A DNA stretch of 64,000 nt from Basidiobolus meristosporus CBS 931.73 (GCA_002104905.1 MCFE01000308.1:1-64000); one strand, 5' to 3'. Counted from the stretch's first letter, positions 16,280-43,228 are shown. A program made the numbers and translations. The notes: a model not told the origin generated them from the sequence alone.

Positions 16280-18307
16280 TTACCAGATGTTGACTCTCTC
16301 GGCTTCGCTACGGTACATTTTATCACCTTCCTTGACACCGAAAGCGTCATAGAATTCCTTGAAGTTGGATAAGGGACCATTGACTCTCCAAATGCCTGGG
16401 GCATGAGGGTCGGTACGAAGGCGGTAAAGAGCCTCTTCCTTGCGAACAACATTCTTCCAGACCGAAGCATAGGCAGTGAAGAACTGTTGCTCAGGAGTAA
16501 GTCCATCAACAGTACCAACGGCGCCAGGGTTGTTCTTTTGCCATTCTTGGAAAGCGAGATAAGACAATTTGACTCCACCGATATCAGCAATGTTTTCACC
16601 CTGGGTTAGGTTTCCATTGACCTTGGAGCCGTACATATCGAAGGTACTGTAAAGGTCAATGACAGTCTTGGCACGTTTATCGAACTCAGCAGCATCCTTG
16701 GGAGTCCACCAATCTTCAAGATTGCCTTGGGCGTTGTAGCTACGACCCTGGTCATCATATCCGTGGGTGATTTCGTGACCAATAACAGCGCCAATGCCAC
16801 CGAAATTGGCTGCAGCATTTCCTCTAGGATCCTTCTCATCAGGAGCGTAGAAGAATGGAGGCTGCAGGATACCAGCGGGGAATGCAATATCATTGTAGTT
16901 GGGATCATAGTAAGCATTAACCTCATAAGCAGTCATGAACCACTTGGATTTGTCGGTTGGACCATTGGAGGCCGACAGAACTGACTTGAAATTGGCGGCG
17001 TTGAGGTCAAGGACGTTGGTGAGGAATGGACTCTTGCGAGAAATCTTGATGTGAGAATAGTCCTTCCATTTGTCAGGATAACCAACCTTCACATTAAGGC
17101 CTTTCAATTTCTCAAGGGCGCGCTTACGAGTTTCTGGACTCATCCACTCGATGGTATCGAGGCGAGTGGCAAGTGCGTTTTGGATCAACTTGACCATCTC
17201 CAAAGCTTGGGCTTTAGCTTCAGGCTTGAATTTCTCCTGCACAAACAGCTGACTCAAGGTATCGGGAATTTGGGAGCCTATCTCGCTCAAAAGGAACTTG
17301 CCACGGGGGGATGGTTCACTTTGGCCACGGAGTGTACGACCGTAGAATTCAAAATCTTGTGCTTTGAACTGCTGGTCAAGATAGGTTGCACTGAATCCTA
17401 GAACATGCCATTCAAAATAGGTGCGCCAGTCCTCAGCACGGAATTGTTTGAATAGAGTGTTGAAGAACTTCAAGAAGTTGGGATTATCAACAATGACATC
17501 ACCATCTCCGAAGCAATGTCCCTTTTTCCATCCTAAGGATTGGCAATAGTTCAACCATGGGAATGCGGGCGTGATTTCTTTCAGTTGTTGGAAGCTAAGT
17601 TTGTTGTAGGTGCGATACACATCACGTTGTTCAACGGAAGATAGAGAGTTCTTAGCTAGGCCGGTTTCGAAATTCAACACAACCTTAGCCTTGGCCTGGG
17701 CGTTTTTGACCTTGGCAAGGGTAAGGATTTTCTCAATATGGGCAAGGTACTTTTGACGGATTTCAGCTTGGCCCTCTTCAGTATAATACTCTCTGCTGGG
17801 AAGAGAGAGACCGTTTTGACCGATGTAGCTCAACGTCCATGTAGAGTTCTTACTATCGGGCAGGGAGGAAATACCGAATAGAGGGCTTGAGCCATGAACG
17901 GAGACTGACAGACTATGAAGCTTGCCAAGTACTTTGGCAGCATCGTTAGGTGAGCGAATGCTACCTACATCACGAAGTAGACTCTTGATAGGAGCCAAAC
18001 CAGCCTTTTGGATAAGGGCGGTATCCATGCCCGAGGCATAGAAATCTCCCAAGAGACCACTTTTAGTAGAGTTGCCAGACTTTTCTAAGGTAGCCAGAAG
18101 GAAGTCGGAATTTCTCTGGTCAAGGACAGAGAAGGTGTTCCAGATGGAGCGATCGCCAGGCAGAGTGGTGTTCTTGATCCAATCGTAGTTGGCATGGAAG
18201 TAGAAATCTTGGGTGGCAGCAGGGGCTTGGGCCGGTAAGTCCTGTGCGTACACTGAGCTACCAGTGACTGCCAAAGACAATAGAAGAAGTCTAGTAGAGG
18301 TGCGCAT
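16280..18307 (-). CDS. Secreted M13 (neprilysin/PepO-type) zinc metallopeptidase, copy 1, intronless, 675 aa
   Basis: Signal peptide MRTSTRLLLLSLAVTGSSVYAQ; VNAYY, HEITH, GENIAD, DPHAP..RVNG. TATATAA on the minus strand at 18364-18370 supports this start over the longer ORF start. Confidence 0.95.
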   Translation of the reverse strand: MRTSTRLLLLSLAVTGSSVYAQDLPAQAPAATQDFYFHANYDWIKNTTLPGDRSIWNTFSVLDQRNSDFLLATLEKSGNSTKSGLLGDFYASGMDTALIQKAGLAPIKSLLRDVGSIRSPNDAAKVLGKLHSLSVSVHGSSPLFGISSLPDSKNSTWTLSYIGQNGLSLPSREYYTEEGQAEIRQKYLAHIEKILTLAKVKNAQAKAKVVLNFETGLAKNSLSSVEQRDVYRTYNKLSFQQLKEITPAFPWLNYCQSLGWKKGHCFGDGDVIVDNPNFLKFFNTLFKQFRAEDWRTYFEWHVLGFSATYLDQQFKAQDFEFYGRTLRGQSEPSPRGKFLLSEIGSQIPDTLSQLFVQEKFKPEAKAQALEMVKLIQNALATRLDTIEWMSPETRKRALEKLKGLNVKVGYPDKWKDYSHIKISRKSPFLTNVLDLNAANFKSVLSASNGPTDKSKWFMTAYEVNAYYDPNYNDIAFPAGILQPPFFYAPDEKDPRGNAAANFGGIGAVIGHEITHGYDDQGRSYNAQGNLEDWWTPKDAAEFDKRAKTVIDLYSTFDMYGSKVNGNLTQGENIADIGGVKLSYLAFQEWQKNNPGAVGTVDGLTPEQQFFTAYASVWKNVVRKEEALYRLRTDPHAPGIWRVNGPLSNFKEFYDAFGVKEGDKMYRSEAERVNIW

Positions 18308-20179
18308 ATGAGACAATTTCTTGTAAAGAATTGGATGGTGAACAGAAAGGAATGCGCATGAGGTTATATAGATTTGGACCATCTCTGGAATAGGTTGAGC
18401 CAGGATTTGATATCAATCAAATGATCGGCTTGAATTGGAAGTTTAAGAGATACAGATATACCCAGTATCCTATATGGCATCCTGCTTTCGAAGAACTAAA
18501 TCCGAACTTTCAAGTTAGTGGGTTCAATCGTGGGGAAACGGAAGTTTGTGGCCCTGTGAGCTCAGCTTTGCTGAAGTGCAATGCAAGAGACGAATTAGTG
18601 ACCTAGAGCTCTTGCGTTGGTCATTGGCTGAAAGCCCAAGGGGATTGGTAAATCGACTTGGTCCAACGATAAGCCGTGTTATAACCAACATGATGAATTA
18701 GAATAAGAGCTGTGAGATACTCATTACTGATCTACCTTATCGCCATTCTATTTGGTGAATTCGTCGTACATCGTCCACAAAGTCACCACCAACTGGTATC
18801 AGTTTGGATGATCCTGGGAAAATCCCAAGAAATGGATGGCCTCTGCTATCGTCACATTTCGATAGGCAATCCCTGGTCAATTTCTAGGATTTGAAGTGAA
18901 ACCATCGAGCTTATACTAATTAGGAATATGCAGAGCTCGAATGATCCGGAAAGTGTGGATTGTAGGCATCATGTGGGCATGAATTTCTCATTGGATAGTC
19001 TTCTGCTCCGAGATATGTTGGATGCACCATGAACAATACGGGCAAAGCCATCATCGATTATTGCGCGGTTGTTACGAGACCTTTGATGTGGTTGTACGCT
19101 AGAGGCCATGCAAGATTATGGATAGAATTGCTGTAGTGTTGCAACCAACCAACTCACTTTGTAGACTGGATCCTGAACTTCGATGGTGTCGTGAGAATCC
19201 AGCACTATCATATCATGGATGGCTCACCTTTCAATTCCTAAATGTGAACAATCTGGTGATACTCGTCACATGTAATCTGCCTAGGGGAGTAGTAATCAGC
19301 CTACCTCAAACTCTCTCCCATCCACCTCCACATCACTATTGCAACATCGGTGGTTCTTTGGACACAGTAACGTAGATGAATAGCCGTTCTATCTATATTT
19401 TCAACGGAAATGCTTATCTGCCATATCTTAGGGTCGTTTAGTTCCTAATATGTTAGAATTCGCTCCACGTTATCAACATGTCGTGCTTGACGAGGTCGAA
19501 GGAGATGGGTTTGATTAGGTGCGAATGTTACCTTCATGGGTTACAGTGTGGCTTAAACTGGTTATTAGGCTACATCTATCCCAGGTACAAGCTCAACTAT
19601 CAATCTCCATAAGGACGCTGTTTGATGTTCCTCATGAATAGAAATATTCGTAGAGGTGAACAACCTCTACCGCCACGCTATATGTGGCATCATAACTACA
19701 AAAAGAAAATTCGTCATGCCCCTGGGTACTAGCTCCAGTTGATAGATGGATGTTTCGTGTTGATGGGGTTCTTTTATTTGTTGAACCCTACCTAATAGGA
19801 GCGCATGGGAAGAAAGACTCGCAAGAAGCATCCTTAGTGACTGTGTGATCTGAGATCCAGAAGTGCGACCTAAAAATGCCCAGGGACTCGGATTATGTGG
19901 TTAAAAAGGTACAACATAATTGCATGAACGGCCGAACCATTTGATATGAAAGGATTCCGTTGAGATCTCAATTACAAAAAGGGCGTGGTCTAGCTGAAAA
20001 TATACATCTCTTAATATTTGGGAGTTGGACGGGATACTGAGTGAGATGAGACAAAGCCCGTTTTTGGTGAGGATTCAGCAATGAGAAAAGAGGTGATGCT
20101 CGACAGAAACAGTTAGTATACTTGTTAAGCGTTAGAGCCTGTGATGAATATGTTCCCCCATAACACCTGGAGACATTCC

Positions 20180-20725
20180 GCCACTAATTAGAATAGCGCA
20201 CATATAAAAATGCACATCTGATACTGACTGCTTTCCATTTTACACCCACCTTTCCCATGTTTGCTTCAATCAATTGAGAGTATAATATCCTTTTGTTATT
20301 CATCCAGTTCAACATGCCTAGGAATCTAGAAACTATCGTTCTCTTAATATTATGCTCAAAATATCCCTATGAAAAATATCATACTTGGAATTCAACTTAT
20401 AAACTGCTGGTATTCTGCTGGTATTTTAATAGTATTTTGCTGGCAATCAGCGCTGGTGCTTTCCTTCAAATTATTAGTAGTAAATCTTTGTGGAAGTAGC
20501 GAGTAGGTTATTATCAAATTAGTTTGTCTGCCAAATGGCAAGAACATGAGATATTCAGAGCAGTAAGTTTCGCTCAACTTGGAACTCTGCTGGCCTTCAG
20601 TTAATTTTTTTCTTAGGGCATGTGAATGTTGATTGACATTTGAAAGAGCCATGTTAATTGTGCTACAGAAATCTTCATATGAAAGCTGGAGTAAGTCCGC
20701 AATACTTAGTGACCATGTATCTTTA
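20180..20725 (-). mobile_element. Possible degenerate Ty3/Gypsy gag-pol remnant
   Basis: Fragments LKDTWSLSIADLLQLS and SRFLGMLNW...KWK...AF loosely resemble Gypsy gag and RT-thumb motifs. AT-rich and abuts LTRs. Confidence 0.3.
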
Positions 20726-21576
20726 AGCATTTGTAAGAGCTTTGGAGATATTGGAAGTAATTGGGACAACAAATAGATTATGGAACTTTCACTTAATGAT
20801 TTGCTCAATGTTGTTGTAGATTTTGTAATTACACCTAAATATTCACCTAACTTAGTCACTTAGATCATAGTCTACAGATCCTAGAGAATTCTGACCAAAT
20901 TCCTTGACAGGATTTACTTGGAATACTTTCACCAAAATATCAAGTACCCAGGACGTTGGAAATTGATATATTGTCCAAACAGCCCCAGACCTTGCACACA
21001 TGCTGTTGGGACCTTTTAGACATACTCTACATGTTTTGCTGGCCAAGGTCACCCAAAAGTATATATACTACTTTTATATTCAATAAATCATCAAGTGAAA
21101 AACCACATAATCTACTTGCTCTCCCAATCACTTCCAATATCTCCAAAACTCTTAAACAAATAATTTGGTGAAGCTATTATAAGTAAATCCCAATAAGGAA
21201 TTTGGGCAGATTTTCTAAGACTTGTAGACTATGATCTAAGTGACCAAGTTAGGTGAATACTCAGGTGTAATTACAAAATTTGTAACAGATTATAGTCTGT
21301 GAGTCAGAAGAACTTGCACAAGTTCATTGTTGGAACTCAGAATACTGCACCAAAATATCAAGTACACAGGACATGAGAAATCTCAGACTTGTTCAAAGAG
21401 CCCCAAAGCTTGTACATATGATCTTGAGATCCCTTTAAGCATATTCTACAAGCTTTTTTTTGCCAACACCTTGTCAAGTATAAATACAACTTTCACAGAC
21501 AATAAATCATTATGTAGAAATCCATATTATACTCGTTCTCCAAATCACTTCGAACATCTTCAAAACCCTTACAACA
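20725..21576. mobile_element. Nested cluster of Copia-family LTR pieces, including a complete plus-strand 347-bp LTR at 20812-21158
   Basis: 20812 TGTTGTA...TAAACA 21158 aligns with the LTRs at 28080 and 63438. It sits between the two halves of a minus-strand LTR (about 21160-21287 and 20725-20805). A further plus-strand 3' LTR part ends ACAACA at 21576. Confidence 0.8.
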
Positions 21577-23309
21577 TAGCCCCAGTGACTAAATTAGTAT
21601 CTAAGGATTATAAGTGTAGCCTGGGATGATTTTCATGCTCATTACCTGATTCATCCACACATTCAAAAGTTTGGAATAGGCACGTGATCAGAAGGGTGTG
21701 TTGCATATATATCTACCTTCAAGATATATCCAAATCACCCTGCCTAAGCTAATAAGATTCTAATTTCGAAATAAATATAACACCCACTTTGCTACAACCA
21801 TTGCATAAAGATCGTTAGTATATGCATCCTGTCTGTCAGATAGATAGTATAAACTTTGACTCACTTTATACTTGAATTTATATGGACTCCAGCATAACAT
21901 CTGGGCATGATGTCTCATAAAACACAAAATCCGAGAGCGAATTGTAATGCTTTGCAAAGTCACCGAACGTACGAAACAAATAATAGTTGACGATACATAC
22001 ATTGGGGTGACTGATCAACAACGCACATATAACACCACCACTGAGTATCTTAGATTAATTGAGTTTCACAATCCTAAGACCATGATATTGTCGATTAATG
22101 GGAGCCCAGCCGAAAACCGATACAGATCTGATTATACCGCCTTGTAGCGCCAAGGGCTAAAAATCTAGAAAATCTATCAAGCATTAGAACTTATGTGGCA
22201 CAACGATTTTGCCTAATCCCTCGCCATTGTCTATTTTTGTAAGTAGCTCTGCTTAGTTGATGTTATCACTTTCTGAAGATAGAACTGAGGCAGTATGGAA
22301 TACTATGTGCTGCTGCTTGTGTCGGATAGAATTCCATGATTTGAGTGGTTTCCGTAGTAAGCTCAGTACCCATATTCCAAGCAATACGTTTAGATAAGGC
22401 AATGCTTCGCATATTCGATTTTAGCATCTGAAAATCCCCAAAGTAGGTACCCTGTGCTCTTTAGCCGCGGTTTCTAAAACGGTTAGGAATACGTTCATCG
22501 CCCAAATGAATGAATGAATGAATCGTTACTCCAGGTACAGATCACCCAAAGTTAGAAGGAATCCTGATATCGAGGAAACCGCTTTCCTAAACCTGTTGCG
22601 ATGAATGGGGTGGTGCTCAATGATCTTCCGGACTCCATTAGCTGATATTCTTGTATCATGAATAATTTGGGTTAGCTGGTAATCATACGAGAAACTTGAC
22701 AGAATGCTTACACATACGCACATGTGGTAGCTCACTAGTTACGGCAAAATTATCTGGAAGACCAGTAATACATTTCGAAACAATGAATGGGAATCTTTGT
22801 GCGGAATGATGTCAACGATGCTAGCCAAGTATGTTGCCGCGCTTATCAACCATCGACTAATGATGCGATGAAGGTCGAATTTGCATCACAGGCTGATAGT
22901 AATAAATCAGTTTCATTTAGGCGAGAATCTTCCATGTATTGGTATATATATGACCTCAAATGGTAGCTAAAAGTGGCAAAATTGGTAAACAAGAGTTTAG
23001 ATTATTCATCCTATTCTAGCCCTTCTAGATTGACATCGAGTTGCCTAGTATGGATGTGTGCTATCTGAATTGGTCACTTTTATACTCGATCAGCATTCTA
23101 ACGCTAATAATTATCGAGTAGGTCTATGTAACCAATTACCATTTGTTTCAATGGTTCCGCTGGAGTACATCAGTCAATTTCATTCTCGGCAGTCAGTGAT
23201 CATACCGTGGAAAATGATTGGTAACAGAGGGCACTGCAAGGAGTTTGCTTGGGTATATATAAGTCTTAGCTCGATGATCGCATTTCAACATCCCTATCTG
23301 TCCTACTCA

Positions 23310-26829: not shown

Positions 26830-27334
26830 TCAACTAAACCATCCAAGCAGTAGTATGTTAACCTAATGTGCAATAATTCTTCCTACATTACCTCCCTCCC
26901 ATATCTAATCCAAGCACACTAATCTATATATCCTTGGAAGTTTACCACTAATTATGTTCCCTATCAATACAGCATCCAATGCAATATAATAATGCACTCT
27001 ACAGTATACTCATATATCCAAATCCAATGTGTTATGCCTAGTTCTAATGCCTTGCAAGTAGAAGAATAACAAGATGTAATTTTGTATGTCAGCCTATGCT
27101 ACAGGTTAGTTTATTCATAATCCATTTGTATCATGGAGGAACTAAACAGTATAGTTTATGATAAGTACTCCTACCTTGCTATACTTTGGATTTGCTATTT
27201 GACCTAACCGTTGCACTTCCACAGCATATATGAATATCTGTAAAGATCTATATCACTCAGCTATTGGAAGTGGTAACTTGGAAATGGTCGGGTAGGAAGT
27301 GTATTTTTCACCCATATGTTTACTGGGCAAAATT

Positions 27335-27668
27335 TGTTTTAAGAGTCTTGGTGATGGTGGAAGTGATTGGAAGAACAAGTGTATTATGTGGGTTTCAGTT
27401 GATGATATAGTGTGTATAAGGGTGGGATTTATGCTTATACAAACCCGTAAATATGCCTAAGAAGATCCCAAAAATATGTGGGCAAAGTTTTGGGGGCTTT
27501 TGGATCACTTCAAGAAATTTGGTGTTTTGGGTACCTGTCAATTTGGTGAAATTATTAGAATTCCAACAAAGAATTAGGGCAGGAAATAGTGAAGTTCATA
27601 AGCTATGATCTAAATGTAAATGACCAAGGCAATGTGGATATTTAGGCGCAAATAGAAAACCTACAGCA
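27335..27668 (-). mobile_element. Degenerate solo LTR, same Copia family
   Basis: Reverse complement starts TGCTGTAG...CCTAAATAT and ends CCAAGACTCTTAAAACA, like the LTR end at 63113. Confidence 0.65.
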
Positions 27669-28079
27669 TAATAATGGTATATATGCTTTTAGTAGGGTAC
27701 TATAAAGCTTCATATCAGAATGTGTTGGGGTGGGTTATAGAAAGATTTGTCACCGGGGTCTCTTTACTTGATCTGAAATGAATTTGCAATTGTCATTTGT
27801 TTTGGTGATCTTTTTGCTACAAGCAAATTACCCAAATATAAAGCTAAAAGTGAAAATGGCTCCAGAAGCATACTTGTAAATGCTGGAAAAACTTCAATCA
27901 CCTAGTAAATGGTAGCTTGCACCTGAACCACGCATATGCCTTAAGATTCTATTTAGCTTATTGCCAAATCATGAATTGTCTACTTAATATTTAGTTTGTA
28001 AGATATTGGCTAATCCTTAGTAATCTAAGGTAACCATCATATGATTATTAGGTCTTCACAAATTCCAAGTAGATCCCAA

Positions 28080-28426
28080 TGTTGTAAATTTCGCAACTAC
28101 ACCTAAATACTCACCTAACTTAGTCACTTAGATCATCACCTACAAATCTTAGAGAATACTGACCAAATTCCTTGTCGGGATTTACTTGGAATATTTCCAC
28201 AGAAACATCAGATACCCAGTACATGAAATATGTCAAAATTGTTCAAACAGCCCCAAACTTTGCACATATGTTCTTGGGACCTTGCTAAACATATTTTGCG
28301 CGTTTATTTGCCAAGACCATGTAAAAGTATAAACACTACTTTTACATTCAATAAATCATTAAGTGAAAACCACATAATCTACTTGTTCTCCCAATCACTT
28401 CCAATATCTCCAAGACTCTCACAACA
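28080..28426 (+). mobile_element. Solo LTR (347 bp), Copia family
   Basis: TGTTGT...ACAACA inverted termini, internal TATA-like AGTATAAA and AATAAA, same length as 20812-21158 and 63438-63784. No intact 5-bp TSD (cccaa vs tatat). Confidence 0.85.
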
Positions 28427-28737
28427 TATATATTATCAAGATATTTCAAACTCGCTCGAAAGCATCCTAACCTTGCACACGAGTTAAAAAATCCAATTAT
28501 GAAATTTTTGATGGAGGATGCTTGTGGTGAACTTTTGAATGTCTGTATGCAAAAATGTCGAACTTCAACCGAGTGCAATTAGACCATTCCGATAATATTC
28601 CGGCAACCTGGGAGTGAAGATAGAACATCCCAAAGACGCCCTATATACGGTAGAAGTTTTGATAGACCCCATTAGAACACTGTGTGAAAATCAGCAAAAA
28701 GCCAACTTAAATTAAGCTTACAGCTTTGAAAAAATTT

Positions 28738-28939
28738 TTGAGTTCTGTTCTTCTACTATTGAGAATGTACTCCACTGAGATTCATCTGCTGGAAGAGTGG
28801 TGTTTTTGATCCAATCATAATTGACATGGAAGTAGAAATCCTCCGAGGCAGCGGGCACCTGGGGTGGCAGGTCCTGAGCGTAGACATAGCTCACGTTGAC
28901 GGAAAATGACAGCATGAGGAGATGGATTGGCTTCCGCAT
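28738..28939 (-). pseudogene. 5'-truncated M13 peptidase copy (signal peptide plus about 45 aa)
   Basis: Nearly base-for-base identical to copy 2 (31511-31710) up to EEQNSK, then runs into unrelated sequence and a stop. The TATA-equivalent position reads TAAAAAA instead of TATAAAA. Confidence 0.9.
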
Positions 28940-29682
28940 TGGAATATTTAGTGAGTACAATAGGCAATGGGTGAATGCTGAAGACTAGTTGAAAGATGAG
29001 TGAAGTTTTTTAGTGTCGGCCTGGTTACCTATTTGATATTTAGCAGATGTTAACTCTTACTAAGCATCGGATCACCGATGAAAACTAAATAGAATCGTGG
29101 TTGAATCTGGGTCGATTCAGATATTTGCTTGTTCAGAAGCTTTTGTGACAGACGCTTTAGTATTGCTGAAACAAAGTCAACAAATACATTTAGCCAGTAG
29201 TTTTGGGCAACTTACAGTGTGTAAAAGTGGAGAGCTAGAAGGTTTACTTGTCCGTATGTTGGGTTCAGTTAAGGGATGTATGCTTTGAGGTGCACATCAT
29301 AGAACTAGTGATAAAGATGTTTTAAAGAAGGCCTCCGGAAGGTCATTTGAAAGCGCTTAATGTTTTGATAACTTCTAAGTGTCTTTATCGTCATAATTTG
29401 AATGGTTCATGTTGAAGATATCACAAAAGCCCTTGAACAAAGTTACCATCCGTCGACCTGATAACCCTACATCCTAACTGTTGTTAAACAACCAAACAAC
29501 CAACCCATATTCACTATGCGCAAATGCATTGAACACGCATGAAATGGTATGATTCAGGATTGGAATAGAATTTACAGGATGAGTATCAAGTTGACAAGGA
29601 CTTTAACAGAACAAAATTCGACATAACACAGGTAAGATACAAAAAGTTCATGAGTCATTTTGTTCACTTACACTCATGATAT

Positions 29683-31710
29683 TTACCAGATGTTAGCCCT
29701 TTCCGCTTCACTGCGATACATCTTATCTCCTTCCTTCACACCAAATGCATCGTAAAACTCTTGGAAGTTTGAGCATGGTCCGTTGACTCTCCAGATCCCC
29801 GGGGAGTGTGGGTCAGTACGAAGACGCAACAATGCCTCCTCCTTGCGAATGACATTCTTCCAAACTTGAGCATAGGCCGAGAAAAACTGTTGTTCTGGAG
29901 AAAGACCATCCACGGTGCCAACTGCTCCTGGGTTGTTCTTCTGCCATTCCTGAAAAGCCAGATAGGAGAGCTTCACTCCTCCAATATCCGCAATGTTCTC
30001 GCCTTGGGTCAGGTTTCCATTGACCTTGGCCCCATAGATCTCATAGCTGCTGTAGAGATCGACAACAATCTTCGCCCGCTTCTCGAACTCTGCTGCGTCG
30101 GTGGGGGTCCACCAATCCTCCAGGTTGCCTTGCGCGTTGTAGTTACGACCCTGATCATCATAGCCGTGGGTGATTTCATGCCCGATAACCGCCCCGATGC
30201 CTCCGAAGTTCGCGGCAGCATTTCCCCTGGGATCCTTCTCATCGGGTGGGTAGAAGAAAGGAGGCTGGAGAATTCCAGCTGGGAAGGCGATACTGTTGGA
30301 TGTGGGATCATAATAAGCATTCACTTCATAAGCAGTCATGTACCAGGTCGACTTATCGGTCGCAGAGTTGGAAGTATCTAGAACATGTTTGAAGCCTACT
30401 CCTGAGGCATTGAGAATATTAGAGAGCAAGGGTTGGCCACGAGATATTTTAACATCTGTATAGTTGTCCCATTTGTCTGGATAACCAATCTTGACATCGA
30501 GTCCCTTCAGTTTTTCAAGTGCACGCGCACGAGTCTCGGAACCCATCCACTCAATTGTCTGTAGGCGTGTTGCCAATGCATCCTGAATGAGGGTCACTAG
30601 CTCTTGAGCTTGTGCTTTGGCTTCGGGCTTGAATTTCTCCTGGACAAATGGCTGGCTCAGGGTATCGGGGATCTGAGAGCCGATCACACCTAACATAAAC
30701 TTCCACCGTGGGGATGGTTCACTTTGGCCTGAGAGAGTGCGTCCATAGAAGTCGAAATCTTGTGCTTCGTACTGCTGGCCAAGGTAGCTGGCACCGTAGC
30801 CAAGGACTTGCCACTGCAGGTATGTTCGCCAATCATCCGCATGGAAGCTGCTAAACAAGGTGTTGACATATCTTAGGAAGTTCGGGCTGTCCACTATCAC
30901 GTCACCATCACCGAAGCAATGCCCTTGCGGCCATCCCAGCGATTGGCAATAGGTGAGCCAGGGGAATGCCGGGGTGAGTGCCCGCAGTTGGTCGAAGGTG
31001 AGTTTGTTGTATGTGCGATACACATCTCGCATTTCAACGGATGATAGCGAGTTGTTGGCAAGGGCCGTCTCAAAGTCCAACACAACCTTGGCTTTGGCCG
31101 CACCATCCTTGACTTGGGCGAGGGTGAAGATCTTCTCAACATGCTCCTGATATTTCTGACGAATCTCAGCTTGATCCGGATCCAGGTAGTACTCTCTGCT
31201 AGGAAGTGATAGGCCACTCTGTCCAATGTAGGAGAGTGTCCAGGTCGAGTTTTTGCTATCAGGTTGGGCGCTGATTCCGAACAGAGGACTGCCCCCATGG
31301 ACGGAGATAAGAAGACTGTGGAGTTTGCCAATGGCTTTGGCGGTGTCATCAGGAGTGCGAACAATTGCCACCTGATTTAGCAAGGCTTTGATGGGATCTA
31401 AGCCCGATTGCTCAATCAGGGTAGTATTCATTCCCGAGGCATAGAAATCGCCCAGAAGGCTGGGTGTGGTTGAGTTTCCTGCCTTCTCCAGCAGGGTCAG
31501 GAGGACTTTTGAGTTCTGTTCTTCTACTATTGAGAATGTACTCCACTGAGATTCATCTGCTGGAAGAGTGGTGTTTTTGATCCAATCATAATTGACATGG
31601 AAGTAGAAATCCTCCGAGGCAGCGGGCACCTGGGGTGGCAGGTCCTGAGCGTAGACATAGCTCACGTTGACGGAAAATGACAGCACGAGGAGATGGATTG
31701 GCTTCCGCAT
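29683..31710 (-). CDS. Secreted M13 metallopeptidase, copy 2, intronless, 675 aa
   Basis: MRKPIHLLVLSFSVNVSYVYAQ; VNAYY, HEITH, GENIAD, DPHSP all intact. Confidence 0.95.
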   Translation of the reverse strand: MRKPIHLLVLSFSVNVSYVYAQDLPPQVPAASEDFYFHVNYDWIKNTTLPADESQWSTFSIVEEQNSKVLLTLLEKAGNSTTPSLLGDFYASGMNTTLIEQSGLDPIKALLNQVAIVRTPDDTAKAIGKLHSLLISVHGGSPLFGISAQPDSKNSTWTLSYIGQSGLSLPSREYYLDPDQAEIRQKYQEHVEKIFTLAQVKDGAAKAKVVLDFETALANNSLSSVEMRDVYRTYNKLTFDQLRALTPAFPWLTYCQSLGWPQGHCFGDGDVIVDSPNFLRYVNTLFSSFHADDWRTYLQWQVLGYGASYLGQQYEAQDFDFYGRTLSGQSEPSPRWKFMLGVIGSQIPDTLSQPFVQEKFKPEAKAQAQELVTLIQDALATRLQTIEWMGSETRARALEKLKGLDVKIGYPDKWDNYTDVKISRGQPLLSNILNASGVGFKHVLDTSNSATDKSTWYMTAYEVNAYYDPTSNSIAFPAGILQPPFFYPPDEKDPRGNAAANFGGIGAVIGHEITHGYDDQGRNYNAQGNLEDWWTPTDAAEFEKRAKIVVDLYSSYEIYGAKVNGNLTQGENIADIGGVKLSYLAFQEWQKNNPGAVGTVDGLSPEQQFFSAYAQVWKNVIRKEEALLRLRTDPHSPGIWRVNGPCSNFQEFYDAFGVKEGDKMYRSEAERANIW

Positions 31711-31769
31711 TGGAATATTTAGTAAATCCACTTGGGAAAGAGTGAATGCTTGAGATTGGGTCATGGATG

Positions 31770-31880
31770 TGGAGTTTTATAGTGTCGGCGAAAGCGCTTA
31801 CTTTCATCATTCACGATAGATCATATGGTAGATTGACTAATGCGGAGAATCGCAGTTACCAACTCTTATTAAGCATTAGA
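31770..31880 (-). promoter_or_regulatory. Conserved M13 upstream block (TATAAAA plus CGCAGTTACCAACTCTT motif on plus strand); equivalents at ~35195-35300, ~40040-40150, ~43290-43395
   Basis: Minus-strand TATAAAA at 31775-31781, 35199-35205, 40047-40053 and 43296-43302, each 66-70 nt from the ATG. Shared downstream-on-plus motif ATC(G/A)CAGTTACCAAC in all four. Confidence 0.6.
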
Positions 31881-33101: not shown

Positions 33102-35129
33102 TTACCAGATGTTGACTCTTTCCGCTTCACTGCGATACATCTTATCTCCTTCCTTTACACCAAATGCTTCGTAAAACTCTTGGAGGTTTGAACAAGGTCC
33201 ATTGACTCTCCATATTGTTGGTGAGTGCGGGTCTATTTGAAGTGACAGCAATGCCAATTCTTTGCGAATGACATTCTTCCACAGCTGGCCAAAAGCTGTG
33301 AAAAACTGTTGTTCTGGAGAAAGACCGTCCACAGCGCCTATTACCCCTGGGTTTTTCTTCTGCCATTCCTGAAAAGCGAGATAGGAAAGCTTTAAACCTC
33401 CAATATCTCCAATGTTCTCACCTTGGGTTAGGTTTCCGTTGACCTTGACCCCATAGACCTCGTAGGTACTGTAGAGATCAATAAGAACTTTCGCTCGCTT
33501 CTCGAACTCTGCTGCGTCAGCAGGAGTCCACCAATCCTCCAGATTACCTTGTGCATTGTAATTGCGACCCTGATCATCATAACCGTGGGTAATCTCATGG
33601 CCGATGATTGATCCAATACTGCCAAAATTCGCGGCTACATTTCCGCTGGGATTATTCTCATCGGGAGGGTAGAAGAATGGCGGTTGGAGAATTCCTGCCG
33701 GGAAGTTAATACTGTTTTGCACTCCGTAATAGTAAGCGTTCACTTGGAAGGCAGACAGGAGCCACATCGATTTATCAGATGGTGAGTTGTAGGCTTGAAG
33801 ACCTTTCTTAAAGTTTAATCCGGAAACTTGGAGCACATTAGAGAGTAAGGGTTGGCCACGAGATATTTTAACATCTGTATAGTTGTCCCATTTGTCTGGA
33901 TAACCAATCTTGACATCGAGTCCCTTCAGTTTTTCAAGTGCACGCGCACGAGTCTCGGGACCCATCCACTCAATTGTCTGTAGGCGTGTTGCCAATGCAT
34001 CCTGAATGAGGGTCACTAGCTCTTGGGCTTGTGCTTTGGCTTCGGGCTTGAATTTCTCCTGGACAAATGGCTGGCTCAGGGTATCGGGGATATGATCGCC
34101 GATCACACCTAATATAAACTTCCAACGAGGAGATGGTTCACTTTGGCCTCGAAGAGTGCGTCCATAGAAGTCGAAATCTTGTGCTTCGTACTGCTGGCCA
34201 AGGTAGCTGGCACTGTAGCCAAGGACTTGCCACTGCAGGTATGTTCGCCAATCATCCGCATGGAAGTTGCTGAACAAGGTGTTGACGTGTCTTAGGAAGT
34301 TCGGGTTGTCCACTATCACGTCACCATCACCGAAGCAATGCCCTTGGGGCCACCCCAGCGATTGGCAATAGGTGAGCCAGGGGAATGCTGGGGTGAGTGC
34401 TCGCAGTTGTTCGAAGGTGAGTTTGTTGTATGTGCGATACACATCTCGCATTTCAACGGATGATAGCGAGTTGTTGGCAAGGGCCGTCTCAAAGTCCAAC
34501 ACAACCTTGGCTTTGGCCGCACCATCCTTGACTTGGGCGAGGGTGAAGATCTTCTCAACATGCTCCTGATATTTCTGACGAATCTCAGCTAGAGCAGCAT
34601 CCGAATAATATTCCCTGTTAGGAAGGGATAGGCCACTCTGTACAATGCGAGCAAGCGTCCAGGTCGAGTTTTTGCTATCAGGTTGGGCACTGATTGAGAA
34701 CAGAGGACTGCCTCCATGGACGGAGATAAAAAGACTGTGGAGTTTGCCAATGGCTTTGGCAGTGTCATCAGGAGTGCGAACAATTGCCACCTGATTTAGC
34801 AGGGCTTTGATGGGATCTAAGCCCGATTGCTCAATCAGGGTAGTATTCATTCCCGAGGCATAGAAATCGCCCAGTAGGCTGGGTGTGGTTGAGTTTCCTG
34901 CCTTCTCCAGCAGGGTCAGAAGATATTCTTTGTTCCGTTCTTGTACTATTGTGAATGCATTGCTCTGAGTCTGATCCGGTGGAAGAGTGGTGTTTTTGAT
35001 CCAATCATAATTGACATGGAAGTAGAAATCCTCCGAGGCAGCGGGCACCTGGGGTGGCAGGTCCTGAGTGTAGACATAGCCCACGTTGACGGACAAGGAC
35101 AGCACGAGGAGATGGATTGGCTTTCGCAT
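33102..35129 (-). CDS. Secreted M13 metallopeptidase, copy 3, intronless, 675 aa, most divergent pocket
   Basis: HEITH, GENIGD, DPHSP intact. Variant segments LLSAFQVNAYYYGVQN, GSIGSIIGHEITH, AFGQLW, LSLQIDPH. Confidence 0.95.
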   Translation of the reverse strand: MRKPIHLLVLSLSVNVGYVYTQDLPPQVPAASEDFYFHVNYDWIKNTTLPPDQTQSNAFTIVQERNKEYLLTLLEKAGNSTTPSLLGDFYASGMNTTLIEQSGLDPIKALLNQVAIVRTPDDTAKAIGKLHSLFISVHGGSPLFSISAQPDSKNSTWTLARIVQSGLSLPNREYYSDAALAEIRQKYQEHVEKIFTLAQVKDGAAKAKVVLDFETALANNSLSSVEMRDVYRTYNKLTFEQLRALTPAFPWLTYCQSLGWPQGHCFGDGDVIVDNPNFLRHVNTLFSNFHADDWRTYLQWQVLGYSASYLGQQYEAQDFDFYGRTLRGQSEPSPRWKFILGVIGDHIPDTLSQPFVQEKFKPEAKAQAQELVTLIQDALATRLQTIEWMGPETRARALEKLKGLDVKIGYPDKWDNYTDVKISRGQPLLSNVLQVSGLNFKKGLQAYNSPSDKSMWLLSAFQVNAYYYGVQNSINFPAGILQPPFFYPPDENNPSGNVAANFGSIGSIIGHEITHGYDDQGRNYNAQGNLEDWWTPADAAEFEKRAKVLIDLYSTYEVYGVKVNGNLTQGENIGDIGGLKLSYLAFQEWQKKNPGVIGAVDGLSPEQQFFTAFGQLWKNVIRKELALLSLQIDPHSPTIWRVNGPCSNLQEFYEAFGVKEGDKMYRSEAERVNIW

Positions 35130-37141: not shown

Positions 37142-37209
37142 TTTACAAGTTCAAGGCTTGGTCATTGACTCTTGACTAGGATATAATGACCAAGCCTTGA
37201 ACTTGTAAA
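37142..37209. repeat. Perfect 25-bp inverted repeat with 18-nt loop
   Basis: TTTACAAGTTCAAGGCTTGGTCATT (37142-37166) and its exact reverse complement AATGACCAAGCCTTGAACTTGTAAA (37185-37209). Confidence 0.95.
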
Positions 37210-37953: not shown

Positions 37954-39981
37954 TTACCAGATGTTTGCCCTTTCCGCTTCACTGCGATACATCTTATCCC
38001 CTTCCTTCACACCAAATGCATCGTAAAACTCTTGGAAGTTTGAGCATGGTCCGTTGACTCTCCAGATCCCCGGGGAGTGTGGGTCGGTACGAAGACGCAA
38101 CAATGCCTCCTCCTTGCGAATGACATTCTTCCAAACTTGAGCATAGGCCGAGAAAAACTGTTGCTCTGGAGAAAGACCATCCACGGTGCCAACTGCTCCT
38201 GGGTTGTTCTTCTGCCATTCCTGAAAAGCCAGATAGGAGAGCTTCACTCCTCCAATATCCGCAATGTTCTCGCCTTGGGTCAGGTTTCCATTGACCTTGG
38301 CCCCATAGATCTCATAGCTGCTGTAGAGATCGACAACAATCTTCGCCCGCTTCTCGAACTCTGCTGCGTCGGTGGGGGTCCACCAATCCTCCAGGTTGCC
38401 TTGCGCGTTGTAGTTACGACCCTGATCATCATAGCCGTGGGTGATTTCATGCCCGATAACCGCCCCGATGCCTCCGAAGTTCGCGGCAGCATTTCCCCTG
38501 GGATCCTTCTCATCGGGTGGGTAGAAGAAAGGAGGCTGGAGAATTCCAGCTGGGAAGGCGATACTGTTGGATGTGGGATCATAATAAGCATTCACTTCAT
38601 AAGCAGTCATGTACCAGACAGATTTATCAGATGGCGAGTTTGATGCTTTCAGAATCTTCTTGAAATGTACCCCAGCGATATTGAGCACGTTGGAGAGCAA
38701 GGGTCGATTTCGAGAAATCTCAATATATGTGTAGTTATCCCAATTTTCTGGATAACCAATCTTGACATCGAGTCCCTTCAGCTTTTCAAGTGCACGCGTA
38801 CGAGTCTCAGGACCCATCCACTCAATTGTCTGTAGGCGTGTTGCCAATGCATCCTGAATGAGGGTCACCATCTCTTGAGCTTGTGCTTTGGCTTCGGGCT
38901 TGAATTTCTCCTGGACAAATGGCTGGCTCAAGGTATCAGGGATCTGAGAGCCTATCACACCTAACATAAACTTCCACCGTGGGGATGGTTCACTTTGGCC
39001 TCGAAGAGTGCGTCCATAGAAGTCGAAATCTTGTGCTTCGTACTGCTGGCCAAGGAAGCTGGCACTGTAGCCAAGGACTTGCCACTGCAGGTATGTTCGC
39101 CAATCATCCGTATGGAAGCTGCTGAACAAGGTGTTGACGTATCTTAGGAAGTTCGGGTTGTCCACTATCACGTCACCATCACCGAAGCAATGCCCTTGGG
39201 GCCATCCCAGCGATTGGCAATAGGTGAGCCAGGGGAATGCCGGGGTGAGTGCTCGCAGTTGTTCGAAGGTGAGTTTGTTGTATGTGCGATACACATCTCG
39301 CATTTCAACGGATGATAGCGAGTTGTTGGCAAGGGCCGTCTCAAAGTCCAACACAACTTTGGCTTTGGCCGCACCATCCTTGACTTGGGCGAGGGTGAAG
39401 ATCTTCTCAACATGCTCCTGATATTTCTGACGAATCTCAGCTTGATCCGGATCCAGGTAGTACTCTCTGCTAGGAAGTGATAGGCCACTCTGTCCAATGT
39501 AGGAGAGTGTCCAGGTCGAGTTTTTGCTATCAGGTTGGGCGCTGATTCCGAACAGAGGACTGCCTCCATGGACGGAGATAAGAAGACTGTGGAGTTTGCC
39601 AATGGCTTTGGCGGTGTCATCAGGAGTGCGAACAATTGCCACCTGATTTAGCAAGGCTTTGATGGGATCTAAGCCCGATTGTTCAATCAGGGTAGTATTC
39701 ATTCCCGAGGCATAGAAATCGCCCAGTAGGCTGGGTGTGGTTGAGTTTCCTGCCTTCTCCAGCAGGGTCAGGAGGAATTTTGAGTTCCTTTCGTCTACTA
39801 CTGAAAATGTATTCCACCGAGACTGATCTGGTGGCAGGGTTATGTTTTTGATCCAATCATAATTGACATGGAAGTAGAAATCCTCCGAGGCAGCAGGCAC
39901 CTGGGGTGGCAAGTCCTGAGTGTAAACATAGCCCGCGTTGATGGACAATGACAGCACGAGGAGATGGATTGGCTTTCGCAT
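37954..39981 (-). CDS. Secreted M13 metallopeptidase, copy 4, intronless, 675 aa
   Basis: All catalytic motifs intact; last ~220 codons almost identical to copy 2. Confidence 0.95.
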   Translation of the reverse strand: MRKPIHLLVLSLSINAGYVYTQDLPPQVPAASEDFYFHVNYDWIKNITLPPDQSRWNTFSVVDERNSKFLLTLLEKAGNSTTPSLLGDFYASGMNTTLIEQSGLDPIKALLNQVAIVRTPDDTAKAIGKLHSLLISVHGGSPLFGISAQPDSKNSTWTLSYIGQSGLSLPSREYYLDPDQAEIRQKYQEHVEKIFTLAQVKDGAAKAKVVLDFETALANNSLSSVEMRDVYRTYNKLTFEQLRALTPAFPWLTYCQSLGWPQGHCFGDGDVIVDNPNFLRYVNTLFSSFHTDDWRTYLQWQVLGYSASFLGQQYEAQDFDFYGRTLRGQSEPSPRWKFMLGVIGSQIPDTLSQPFVQEKFKPEAKAQAQEMVTLIQDALATRLQTIEWMGPETRTRALEKLKGLDVKIGYPENWDNYTYIEISRNRPLLSNVLNIAGVHFKKILKASNSPSDKSVWYMTAYEVNAYYDPTSNSIAFPAGILQPPFFYPPDEKDPRGNAAANFGGIGAVIGHEITHGYDDQGRNYNAQGNLEDWWTPTDAAEFEKRAKIVVDLYSSYEIYGAKVNGNLTQGENIADIGGVKLSYLAFQEWQKNNPGAVGTVDGLSPEQQFFSAYAQVWKNVIRKEEALLRLRTDPHSPGIWRVNGPCSNFQEFYDAFGVKEGDKMYRSEAERANIW

Positions 39982-41200
39982 TGGAATATGGTAAATCCAC
40001 TTAGTAGCGCGTGAGTGCTGGACTGATGGGCAAAATGAGGGCTGACTTTTATATTGTCAACCTGATTACCTACTCATCGTCCTTGAGTGATCAGATGATT
40101 GATTCTTGCCAAAATAGAGATCACAGTTACCAACGCTTAATGACATTAGATCAGCAATGGAAGGATGTTCGAACCACAAGTGAACCATCGGCTGCAATAC
40201 AATCCAATGAACTTGGTATTATCATCAAAATAAACAAGGGCTGAATCATAAATTGCTCTATAGTAGTAATAATTGGCTGAGCAGGTGGGTGGACTAGTGA
40301 ATCAGCGAGCTGGAAATAGGATTAGCATGAGATCCAAAGATTCATTAGTGCAGGTTTAAAAATACGAAGCAACCTTTCTATTCTTTCGCCCTATCACCAT
40401 TGTACGTCCTTGGGAAAATTCGGCACTGTGCCAGATTCAAATGAAAACCCGTGCTGCAAAATGGCTAATACGACTACTCGATTTAAAGGTTCAAAAGTGC
40501 AGTTGGATTCTTTATGTAGTGTTTCGAACCACTGATTGCATTGGATCTGATATAGGCTTGTAAACCAAGTACGGATCAACTAGTATTCGCTTCGTGACTT
40601 GCCTTGAACTTCCGTAATCTATGATAGTTCCTGATTGGATCCAGCAGCAACACAGAAATTCCACAAGCAACAGTATCCAGTAGTGCGAATCTGACAGGAA
40701 GCAGGTATATAGGTATTGTATATTTCAAAGCCTTCTGCCAGGGAAATTAATGGGTTGGCCTAAAGCCTGAAGTTAAATATCATATGTATAGGCGATTTCC
40801 GTTTATTCACATCTCAGATACTTGAACTGTTTCTAGCCAGTCAAACATTTCAAACTATTGACCCTCAACCAAGATTCACCAGAAATTATGATGAAGTTCC
40901 CCATTTTCCCATGCATGATGCCACCTCTATACACTAGAGTCACCTAAATGCCTTAATATGAATAGTATGTATTGAATACCGAATAGCAAATCTATTAACA
41001 GAGGCAAAGTCATCTGGCCCTTCAATAAGCTGAGCTATAAGCAGTAACTTTGAGAATTCACTTAGATAGCCTTATATTCTGTTTTAACGAGAAAGTTTCT
41101 ACTTGGTGAAAATTGCGCTGTGCCCATATAGGATCCACCAGGTATGCTTGGATTATATGCATTCAAAAATTGGATGATGTTCTTGCCTTAGTTCGCAATT

Positions 41201-43228
41201 TTACCAGATATCTGCCCTTTCCGCTTCACTGCGATACATCTTATCCCCTTCCTTCACATCAAATGCATCGTAAAACTCTTGAAAGTTCGAGCATGGTCCG
41301 TTGACTCTCCAGATCCCCGGGGAGTGTGGGTCAATTTGAATATACAGCAACGCCTCCTCCTTGCGAATGATATTCTTCCAAACTTGAGCATAGGCCGAGA
41401 AAAACTGTTGCTCTGGAGAAAGACCATCCACGGTGCCAACTGCTCCTGGGTTGTTCTTCTGCCATTCCCGAAAAGCCAGATAGGAGAGCTTCACTCCTCC
41501 AATATCCGCAATGTTCTCGCCTTGGGTCAGGTTTCCATTGACCTTGGCCCCATAGATCTCATAGCTGCTGTAGAGATCGACAACAATCTTCGCCCGCTTC
41601 TCGAACTCTGCTGCGTCAGTGGGGGTCCACCAATCCTCCAGGTTGCCTTGCGCGTTGTAGTTACGACCCTGATCATCATAGCCGTGGGTGATTTCATGCC
41701 CGATAACCGCCCCGATGCCTCCGAAGTTCGCGGCAGCATTTCCCCTGGGATCCTTCTCATCGGGTGGGTAGAAGAAAGGAGGCTGGAGAATTCCAGCTGG
41801 GAAGGCGATACTGTTGTATGTTCCATAATAGTACGCGTTCACTAGATAAGGAGCCATGAGCCATATCGATTTATCAGATGGCGAGTTTGATGCTTTCAGA
41901 ATCTTCTTGAAATTTACCGCAGAGATATTGAGCACATTGGAGAGCAAGGGTAAATTACGAGCTATTTCAACATCCGTGTAGTTATCCCAATTTTCTGGAT
42001 AACCAATCTTGACATCGAGTCCCTTCAGCTTTTCAAGTGCACGCGCACGAGTCTCGGGACCCATCCACTCAATTGTCTGTAGGCGTGTTGCCAATGCATC
42101 CTGAATGAGGGTCACTAGCTCTTGAGCTTGTGCTTTGGCTTCGGGCTTGAATTTCTCCTGGACAAATGGCTGGCTCAAGGCATCAGGGATCTGAGAGCCT
42201 ATCACACCTAACATAAACTTCCACCGTGGGGATGGTTCACTTTGGCCTCGAAGAGTGCGTCCATAGAAGTCGAAATCTTGTGATTTATACTGCTGGCCAA
42301 GGTAGCTGGCACTGTAGCCAAGGACTTGCCACTGCAGGTATGTTCGCCAATCATCCGTATGGAAGCTGCTGAACAAGGTGTTGACGTATCTTAGGAAGTT
42401 CGGGCTGTCCACTATCACGTCACCATCACCGAAGCAATGCCCTTGGGGCCATCCCAGCGATTGGCAATAGGTGAGCCAGGGGAATGCCGGGGTGAGTGCC
42501 CGCAGTTGTTCGAAGGTGAGTTTGTTGTATGTGCGATACACATCTCGCATTTCAACGGATGATAGCGAGTTGTTGGCAAGGGCCGTCTCAAAGTCCAACA
42601 CAACCTTGGCTTTGGCCGCACCATCCTTGACTTGGGCGAGGGTGAAGATCTTCTCAACATGCTCCTGATATTTCTGACGAATCTCAGCTTGATCCGGATC
42701 CAGGTAGTACTCTCTGCTAGGAAGTGATAGGCCACTCTGTCCAATGTAGGAGAGTGTCCAGGTCGAGTTTTTGCTATCGGGCCAGGCACTGATTCCGAAT
42801 AAAGGGCTTCCACCATATACTGAAATTGCGAGACTGTGGAGTTTGCCAATGGCTTTGGCGGTGTCATCAGGAGTGCGAACAATTGCCACCTGATTTAGCA
42901 AGGCTTTGATGGGATCTAAGCCTGATTGCTCAATCAGGGTAGTATTCATTCCCGAGGCATAGAAATCGCCCAGAAGGCTGGGTGTGGTTGAGTTTCCTGC
43001 CTTCTCCAGCAGGGTCAGGAGGAATTTTGAGTTCCTTTCATCTACTGCGGCAAACGGACTCCACTGAGTCTGGTCTGGTGGCAGAGTTATGTTTTTGATC
43101 CAATCATAATTGACATGGAAGTAGAAATCCTCCGAGGCAGCAGGCACCTGGGGTGGCAAGTCCTGAGTGTAAACATAGCCCGCGTTGATGGACAATGACA
43201 GCACGAGGAGATGGATTGGCTTTCGCAT
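41201..43228 (-). CDS. Secreted M13 metallopeptidase, copy 5, intronless, 675 aa
   Basis: All catalytic motifs intact. Variant patches QWSPFAAV, LMAPYLVNAYYYGTYN and LYIQIDPH in an otherwise copy-4-like scaffold. Confidence 0.95.
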   Translation of the reverse strand: MRKPIHLLVLSLSINAGYVYTQDLPPQVPAASEDFYFHVNYDWIKNITLPPDQTQWSPFAAVDERNSKFLLTLLEKAGNSTTPSLLGDFYASGMNTTLIEQSGLDPIKALLNQVAIVRTPDDTAKAIGKLHSLAISVYGGSPLFGISAWPDSKNSTWTLSYIGQSGLSLPSREYYLDPDQAEIRQKYQEHVEKIFTLAQVKDGAAKAKVVLDFETALANNSLSSVEMRDVYRTYNKLTFEQLRALTPAFPWLTYCQSLGWPQGHCFGDGDVIVDSPNFLRYVNTLFSSFHTDDWRTYLQWQVLGYSASYLGQQYKSQDFDFYGRTLRGQSEPSPRWKFMLGVIGSQIPDALSQPFVQEKFKPEAKAQAQELVTLIQDALATRLQTIEWMGPETRARALEKLKGLDVKIGYPENWDNYTDVEIARNLPLLSNVLNISAVNFKKILKASNSPSDKSIWLMAPYLVNAYYYGTYNSIAFPAGILQPPFFYPPDEKDPRGNAAANFGGIGAVIGHEITHGYDDQGRNYNAQGNLEDWWTPTDAAEFEKRAKIVVDLYSSYEIYGAKVNGNLTQGENIADIGGVKLSYLAFREWQKNNPGAVGTVDGLSPEQQFFSAYAQVWKNIIRKEEALLYIQIDPHSPGIWRVNGPCSNFQEFYDAFDVKEGDKMYRSEAERADIW

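Follow-up and report, generated by a model that had tools for sequence, protein, structure and literature searches.

Gene conversion and two putative substrate-pocket types in a tandem array of M13 peptidase genes of Basidiobolus meristosporus

Introduction

How do neighbouring protease genes come to share almost all of their sequence while differing sharply in a few short patches that seem to lie at the substrate pocket? The question is raised by a locus of the fungus Basidiobolus meristosporus CBS 931.73, within a 64,000-nucleotide stretch of DNA (GCA_002104905.1, MCFE01000308.1:1-64000; hereafter the window). Between positions 16280 and 43228, its minus strand carries five intact, intron-less open reading frames (ORFs) for M13 peptidases, here called c1 to c5. 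A preliminary description, made from the sequence alone, took the patches to be hypervariable pocket segments on a conserved scaffold and the five genes to be a diversifying panel of secreted proteases tuned to host or competitor peptides. Members of the genus Basidiobolus inhabit vertebrate guts and are an occasional cause of human infection.

Here we find that c2 to c5 form an old tandem array homogenised by gene conversion, with c1 as a separate and older lineage. The patches are best read as islands of old sequence, two of which define two types of putative substrate pocket.

Results

Gene conversion has homogenised c2 to c5

The five genes occupy 16280..18307 (c1), 29683..31710 (c2), 33102..35129 (c3), 37954..39981 (c4) and 41201..43228 (c5), all on the minus strand. 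Each runs for 675 codons from a conserved methionine (MRKPIH or MRTSTR), the five-way alignment is free of gaps, and the GenBank gene calls for c2 to c5 on contig MCFE01000308 also give 675 residues. ORF, Pfam and alignment evidence confirmed the earlier statement that there are five intact 675-residue paralogs with invariant HEITH, GENI.D and DPH.P motifs; the strings quoted at that time for three variable blocks, and for c3 (GSIGSIIGHEITH and FGQLW), were exact throughout. We keep these blocks as reference points: Block 1 towards the N-terminus (codons 52–62; 39796..39828 on the minus strand in c4, and at equivalent offsets in the other copies), Block 2 around the VNAYY motif (codons 455–471) and Block 3 before DPH (codons 628–632).

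In our codon map, 552 of 675 codons have the same three nucleotides in c2, c4 and c5. The differences, synonymous and nonsynonymous alike, are co-located in a few islands, at codons 46–70, 133–150, 411–471 and 626–632, and this clustering is far beyond chance. Outside the islands the synonymous divergence (dS) is 0.03–0.06, and the ratio of nonsynonymous to synonymous divergence (dN/dS) is 0.21–0.26; in islands A (codons 46–70) and C (codons 411–471) dS is 0.4–1.0 and dN/dS 0.24–0.43. Over whole genes, dN/dS among c2 to c5 is 0.18–0.29. When the comparison of c4 with c5 is confined to codons for an unchanged amino acid, 17–67% of these codons differ inside the islands and 1.9% outside them (Fisher p 7e-3 to 8e-13). 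Synonymous change is 9- to 35-fold higher in the patches than elsewhere. Because synonymous divergence is raised inside the islands too, they represent old sequence and not hot spots of replacement.

Relationships among the genes switch along their length. The identity of c3 to c2, c4 and c5 is 93–100% through codon ~410 and 64–86% thereafter, while a sliding nearest-neighbour map shows c4 and c5 to be identical at the 5′ end and c2 to be nearest to c3 in codons 391–435. Quartet-informative sites form one run that pairs c2 with c3 and c4 with c5 as far as codon 450 and, beyond it, a second run that pairs c2 with c4 and c3 with c5 (permutation clustering p <= 5e-5), and c3 has 66 private sites in codons 473–600. 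A GENECONV-style permutation was significant in all six pairs of c2 to c5, with p <= 2e-4 in four of them, 8e-4 for c3–c4 and 0.014 for c4–c5. The longest identical tract, 453 nt, joins c2 and c4 (codons 455–606). Copies resemble each other for 2–170 bp past the 3′ end of the coding sequence and for ~200–550 bp before its 5′ end; the flank directly 5′ of c4 (39982..40196, minus strand) can still be aligned with that of c5 (43229–43447), and the rest of the 1.2–2.8-kb spacers is unrelated.

From the near-identical tracts, the gene relationships that switch along the gene and the unrelated spacers, we conclude that c2 to c5 are an old tandem array homogenised by interlocus gene conversion, which has made the proximal promoter and most of each coding region nearly identical. 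It is this recent conversion, and not slow evolution, that has left the scaffold uniform, so that it cannot be called conserved in the sense first proposed. The related claim that the copies differ mainly in short blocks holds in that differences do cluster. However, the three blocks contain 18 of the 67 variable residues of c2, c4 and c5, and the largest variable stretch (codons 411–456, with 20 variable residues) had been left out; moreover, c1 differs along its whole length and c3 along its last third (codons ~420–675).

Two short-read genomic runs from the same sample bear on the assembly of the array. The unique spacers flanking the copies are covered at ~105–128x, the single-copy depth, and bins with the c5 patch sequences reach contig depth at >= 98% likeness in both runs. 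Contigs assembled from the short reads break inside the repeats and none spans a whole copy; one branch point coincides with the edge of Block 2, at 38617. A run with a second organism label yielded just repeat fragments of c4. The other runs found to contain c5 were all genomic contigs from this strain, and the runs listed for c4 included no RNA run. The short-read contigs therefore support the patch sequences themselves and not the linkage of patches within each gene.

Two islands define two pocket types

Codons 455–471 and 628–632 divide the copies into two pocket types, type I in c1, c2 and c4 and type II in c3 and c5; the co-variation of Blocks 2 and 3 in these two classes had been recognised earlier, and it is real. 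Type I is ancestral: besides c1, c2 and c4, all other paralogues and orthologues from Basidiobolus have it. Type II is derived, and common to c3 and c5 by descent or by transfer between copies. It replaces the charged residues E462, D468, R629 and R631 by neutral or aromatic ones, and also carries P469G and T632I, at positions where the original residue is conserved in 90% (P469) and 96% (T632) of 113 other homologues. The derived codons common to c3 and c5 include CCC to GGA at 469, which alters three positions, CGT to CAA at 631, CTG at 628 and AT. at 632. Because these derived codons differ at multiple nucleotides, the type II pocket arose once, and a convergent origin in c3 and c5 was rejected. 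The two versions have diverged further from each other, with a proportion of differing nonsynonymous sites (pN) of 0.24.

The two type II genes are built differently. c3 is a chimera in which an old segment, codons ~420–675 (33102–33872, minus strand), carries the type II pocket together with private changes at the putative S1′ subsite. c5 is a type I scaffold, like those of c4 and c2, that keeps two short type II patches. Its Block 2 island (41816..41866, minus strand), on either side of VNAYY, is bordered by sequence up to 100% identical to c4, and 10 of 10 quartet-informative sites within it join c3 with c5. Its Block 3 island (41333..41347, minus strand) differs from c4 at 8 of its 15 nt, with CTG, CAA and AT. 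common to c3. These c3-like remnants of 51 nt and 15 nt, separated by ~470 nt nearly identical to c4, are exactly the two stretches of densest amino-acid difference. That such short patches were kept is suggestive of selection retaining them. c4 and c5 differ at ~46 residues in all, of which 6 + 8 + 4 = 18 lie within the three pocket-adjacent blocks.

The remaining islands have other histories. The largest (codons 411–454; 38620..38751 in c4, minus strand) pairs c2 with c3 and c4 with c5, an arrangement backed by 14 sites, and it varies throughout the family. Island B of c5 (codons 133–150; 42779..42832, minus strand) has a proportion of differing synonymous sites (pS) of 0.94 and few amino-acid changes: 10 of 15 same-amino-acid codons differ from c4, with 3 amino-acid replacements. 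Its synonymous divergence from c2, c3 and c4 exceeds that from c1. No close donor for island B was found among the eight other Basidiobolus genes examined, and its source would be the original c5 sequence or a paralogue outside the sample.

The blocks map to putative substrate subsites

We related c4 to human neprilysin by offsets from invariant motifs (neprilysin N542, H583, E646, W693, H711, G714 and R717), which gave mutually consistent positions. N464 and Y466 of c4 thereby correspond to N542 and F544, I480 and F485 to I558 and F563, A507 and V508 to M579 and V580, H511 and E571 to H583 and E646, V616 and W617 to V692 and W693, R629 to S705, D633 and H635 to D709 and H711, and G638 and R641 to G714 and R717. 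Residues 55, 59 and 63 fall at R102, F106 and R110, a placement that fits the R-x3-F-x3-R spacing and the published remark that PepOs keep just one of the two neprilysin S2′ arginines.

The roles of the neprilysin residues were drawn from four papers (PMC4908401, PMC4121237, PMC11997989 and PMC12686026). R102, F106, R110 and W693 shape the S1′ and S2′ subsites, N542 and R717 bind the ligand backbone, F544 forms S1, and G714 governs the plasticity of S1′ (PMC4908401; PMC4121237). The S1′ subsite itself comprises F106, I558, F563, M579, V580 and W693 (PMC11997989). In a screen of 134 residues lining the neprilysin chamber, the largest shifts in specificity came from substitutions at 705, 709 and 714.

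On this alignment, the earlier proposal that the blocks line substrate subsites stands as a probable placement. Block 1 would span the S2′/S1′ segment R102-F106-R110, with a strand at 55–57 and a helix at 58–78 in the c4 model described below; Block 2 would lie on both sides of the substrate-binding N542/F544 strand; and Block 3 would hold the S705 equivalent (residue 629) and abut D709/H711. From c1 to c5, residue 55 is I, Q, Q, R and Q, and residue 63 is D, E, Q, D and D, so that c4 is the sole copy with an arginine at the R102 position. The S1′ residues are constant in all copies but c3, where A507S, V508I, A614G, V616L and G638T hit the equivalents of M579/V580, A690/V692 and G714; changes at the M579/V580 and V692 equivalents had already been noted, and those at A690 and G714 are added here. 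Overall, the data show two pocket types with variation at S2′ positions, and not a broad panel.

Replacements are concentrated in the type II copies

Blocks 2 and 3 together comprise 22 codons. Between c3 and c4 they hold 19.7 nonsynonymous (Nd) and 11.3 synonymous (Sd) differences, and between c5 and c4 an Nd of 16.5 and an Sd of 7.5; in the syntenic single-copy orthologues P0005 and P0004, Nd is 0 and Sd 13 (pS 0.96). For c3–c4, these blocks exceed the remainder of the C-terminal third in their ratio of nonsynonymous to synonymous differences (N:S; Fisher p = 0.003). Relative-rate comparison, whichever of three outgroups is used, assigns the replacements in Blocks 2 and 3 to c3 over c4 or c2 by 8–9 to 0, and to c5 by 8–9 to 0–1. 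In Block 1, pN between c3 and c4 is 0.32 against a pS of 0.13, with counts too small for significance. Isolated dN/dS values of 1.05–1.6 were also seen, each resting on just 3–15 nonsynonymous differences.

The unconverted C-terminal third of c3 has a dN/dS of 0.08–0.09, and its catalytic motifs are intact. We therefore regard c3 as a still working gene and not a decaying one. Judged by their sequences, the type II copies have probably diverged in function.

c1 to c5 are predicted secreted M13 endopeptidases

All five copies contain PF05649 (Peptidase_M13_N) and PF01431 (Peptidase_M13), with E-values of 1e-62 to 1e-105 and scores of 345–354 and 212–225 bits against gathering cut-offs of 32 and 24.5. 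The zinc site consists of HEITH (511–515) and G-E-N-I-A/G-D (570–575), and H511, E512, H515, E571 and D575 are unchanged across a 50-sequence alignment. HEITH, GENI.D, DPH.P and VNAYY are identical across c1 to c5, as are V463-N-A-Y-Y467, D633-P-H635 and R641, the equivalent of neprilysin R717.

For c4, an AlphaFold2 model based on the 50-sequence alignment reached a mean predicted local distance difference test (pLDDT) of 93.9 and a predicted template modelling score (pTM) of 0.90. In Foldseek it matched the closed structures 9kn2 and 9fma (PgPepO) and 3zuk (Zmp1) with template modelling (TM) scores of 0.90–0.93. As modelled, c4 has the two-lobed M13 fold with its catalytic chamber. Among solved structures, bacterial PepO and Mycobacterium tuberculosis Zmp1 are closest in sequence (E 1e-123 to 1e-132), followed by ECE-1 and neprilysin.

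At the N-terminus, ~21 residues precede a mature-looking QDLPP; these begin with a basic stretch, continue into a hydrophobic core of 11 residues and end in V-Y-A/T ahead of QD. The Pfam N-domain begins at residue 33, and residues 1–21 have low pLDDT in the c4 model. This region looks like a short cleavable signal peptide rather than a membrane anchor of the neprilysin type, and on reading the sequences we found no neprilysin/ECE-type N-terminal cytoplasmic tail with an uncleaved signal-anchor in c1 to c5. The signal-peptide reading agrees with a survey of early-diverging fungi, which in its passages on the family notes M13 expansions, describes M13 peptidases in all fungal taxa, predicts their secretion and proposes that they serve nutrition (PMC8778642). 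By prediction, then, c1 to c5 are secreted, soluble M13 zinc endopeptidases of the PepO type.

Like bacterial PepO and Zmp1 (9kn2/9fma, Tannerella forsythia PepO 9eyg and 3zuk), to which they show 33–34% identity and whose closed states gave the TM scores above, the Basidiobolus proteins have a two-domain fold, the same length class, a soluble form and the full catalytic set, with tyrosine in place of phenylalanine at S1, as in PepOs. Unlike them, the Basidiobolus genes are eukaryotic, form a monophyletic clade and occur in tandem with concerted evolution. Against the bacterial consensus, the Basidiobolus clade has A-Y-E in place of P-P-T at 460–462, has mostly lost R55 and has arginine in place of N631. 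With human neprilysin and ECE-1 they share the Pfam domains, the zinc ligands, the Asn-Ala strand, Asp-x-His and the Arg717 equivalent, and the S1′ residues F106, I558, F563 and W693 of neprilysin are kept as F59, I480, F485 and W617. They differ from these enzymes in overall sequence (26–27% identity), in reading as proteins without a type II membrane anchor and in not keeping the S2′ arginine pair R102/R110.

A six-residue insertion, YPPDEK (YAPDEK in some copies), directly follows PPFF, at codons 487–492 of c4 (38506–38523). It is present in every Basidiobolus copy of the clade and is not found in the aligned bacterial PepO and Zmp1 sequences. The first phenylalanine of the adjoining PPFF corresponds to the neprilysin S1′ residue F563.

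c1 belongs to an older lineage

c1 is 71–77% identical to c2 to c5, with differences all along its length and synonymous sites that are saturated (pS ~0.8); 146 of the 225 variable columns lie outside any block. A maximum-likelihood tree places all Basidiobolus M13 proteins in a single clade. One subclade (clade alpha) groups c1 with the B. ranarum fragment P0007 and also holds the single-copy pair P0005/P0004, while the other contains c2 to c5 with P0006. The gene order at c1 (KA1 kinase, M13 gene, Mem_trans transporter, kinase) is that of the P0005 locus on MCFE01000037. In position, c1 is thus the paralogue of single-copy P0005, and it represents a separate, older lineage. At c1, codon 336 (17300–17302), in the non-catalytic lobe, encodes glycine; the residue is tryptophan in 113 of 113 other homologues and in every other Basidiobolus copy.

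A ~25-kb segment with c2 to c5, a fragment of c2 and a DUF7137 gene lies between the transporter (23.5 kb) and the kinase (50–51.8 kb), and is not present at the paralogous locus on MCFE01000037. The comparison points to a large-scale duplication, after which the array was inserted or expanded.

Eight of the nine genes sampled from the main Basidiobolus M13 clade are single-exon genes of exactly 2028 nt, and P0006 has 2013 nt; genes neighbouring the M13 copies have introns (e.g. a 330-residue kinase over 1402 nt). The best matches of c4 outside Basidiobolus are bacterial, at 40–44% identity, and P0008 is a B. meristosporus paralogue at 42%. Recent transfer of the array from bacteria was not supported: all twelve Basidiobolus M13 proteins fall together in a clade apart from the sampled bacteria, and the existence of a chytrid M13 homologue and the published occurrence of M13 in all fungal taxa also count against it.

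Other features of the window

A tblastn search of the window with c4 revealed no additional full copy, just a truncated sixth copy at 28736–29031 (minus strand). It derives from c2, comprising the first 68 codons, Block 1 included, with ~80 nt upstream, is 92.6% identical to 31507–31789 and runs into stop codons. A repeated element of ~100–350 bp, with 68–84% identity and in both orientations, occurs at 20729–21578, 27332–28430 and 45392–45497, on both sides of the c2 to c5 array and also near c1, and is a possible remnant of a transposon. Further along, an ordinary and unrelated gene for a UBR1-type N-recognin E3 ligase (53732–58722, minus strand) is split over several ORFs and has zf-UBR, ClpS, UBR1-like wing, RING and PRT6_C domains.

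Discussion

We put at roughly 0.65 the probability that the locus combines an old conversion array, c2 to c5, with an older c1, that its patches are unconverted islands, and that the type II pocket carries a difference in substrate. Conversion tracts have repeatedly overwritten c2 to c5, and the islands have escaped, retaining old synonymous and nonsynonymous divergence. A preference for different peptides, mainly at P2′ and on the non-primed side, would distinguish the type II enzymes, as well as copies with other residues at the R102 and R110 equivalents. Selection for this difference in substrate may have helped the patches to survive homogenisation.

Several observations weigh against this reading. 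By Nei-Gojobori counts, dN/dS significantly above 1 was not found in any comparison, the islands ranging from 0.15 to 0.6, and the nonsynonymous fraction in Blocks 2 and 3 (0.63–0.69) is slightly below the neutral 0.77–0.78. Island B persisted or was imported almost without amino-acid change, and because it is nearly all synonymous, the survival of an island is by itself no proof of selection. The island at codons 411–454 may simply be a loosely constrained stretch. c3 is accelerated over its whole catalytic third (22:4), which would also fit a partial relaxation of constraint. Finally, the placement of the blocks at the pocket draws on motif-anchored alignment and published residue roles, and so should be taken as putative.

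Some of these points could be accommodated by a neutral mosaic under relaxed constraint, in which islands persist through blocked heteroduplex formation or patchy mismatch repair and type II is tolerated drift, with no tuning of specificity. Such drift would account for the almost purely synonymous island B, for an N:S ratio in the patches that is compatible with neutrality and for the acceleration of c3 throughout the catalytic third; the replacement of the near-universal P469 and T632 in c3 and c5, and of W56 in c3, could then mean impairment. We nevertheless consider it unlikely, given the low dN/dS (~0.08–0.09) of the unconverted third of c3, the intact catalytic and zinc residues in every copy and the match of the two c5 remnants, on either side of nearly c4-identical sequence, to the densest amino-acid difference. 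The four charges lost in type II are, moreover, balanced (two acidic, two basic), which suggests coordinated change.

Ongoing diversifying selection on pocket patches of a slowly evolving scaffold, giving five proteases tuned to host or competitor peptides, was the view of the preliminary description, and we now think it improbable. The patches do coincide with subsite-lining segments of neprilysin, Blocks 2 and 3 are far more changed in c3 and c5 than in orthologues, and the excess of pN over pS in Block 1 between c3 and c4 points the same way, on counts too small for significance. Yet synonymous divergence is up by an order of magnitude in the same patches, so hypervariability is no sign of such selection there; dN/dS in them is 0.2–0.6 and never significantly above 1; and conversion tracts account for the uniform scaffold. 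The excess of nonsynonymous change in the blocks, whose absence had been named beforehand as evidence against the proposal, was not found, which largely undercuts it on its own terms. Nor do the copies make up a five-member panel: c2 and c4 are identical in Blocks 2 and 3, S1′ is constant but in c3, and c1 lies outside the array lineage.

An assembly artefact, with near-identical repeats mis-joined into unreal mosaic genes, is barely credible: the short-read contigs do break within genes, none spanning a copy and one branching at 38617, but such breaks are expected in short-read assembly of repeats, whereas the single-copy depth of the unique flanks of each copy, the contig depth of the c5 patch bins, the perfect 675-codon frames of all five genes and the graded tracts that conversion yields all speak against it.

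Classical cases of concerted evolution are the primate red/green opsins, RHD/RHCE, the MHC and plant R-gene clusters. The Basidiobolus array resembles them in its long converted tracts, discordant relationships, diverged flanks and islands at distinguishing residues, and differs from them in concerning a predicted secreted fungal metallopeptidase and in having an island, B, that is essentially synonymous. The passages on M13, Basidiobolus and neprilysin in the survey of early-diverging fungi mention no Basidiobolus array, gene conversion or pocket classes (PMC8778642).

A more tentative extension of the unconverted-island reading is that selection shields short pocket cassettes from homogenisation, so that the copies share a repaired scaffold with exchangeable specificity patches, and c5 is a natural pocket-swap chimera. 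If this were true, the equivalents of neprilysin 535–540, 546–549 and 704–708 would be little-noticed determinants of M13 specificity, and the differing substrates could be gut peptides of the amphibians and reptiles that Basidiobolus inhabits. Bacterial PepO cuts angiotensin I (PMC12686026) and is reported to cut cathelicidins (PMC10732652). A differentiated set of secreted M13 peptidases would be worth an activity test, a purely nutritional role being equally possible.

For the M13 family, the locus offers a natural experiment on specificity, with type I (c2 and c4), type IIa (c3) and type IIb (c5) on a near-identical scaffold. It is a new example of a known mode of evolution, concerted evolution, in a known enzyme family. 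More generally, a pattern of conserved scaffold and hypervariable patches in proteins can come from gene conversion and not from fast adaptive change, and it is the synonymous sites that tell the two apart.

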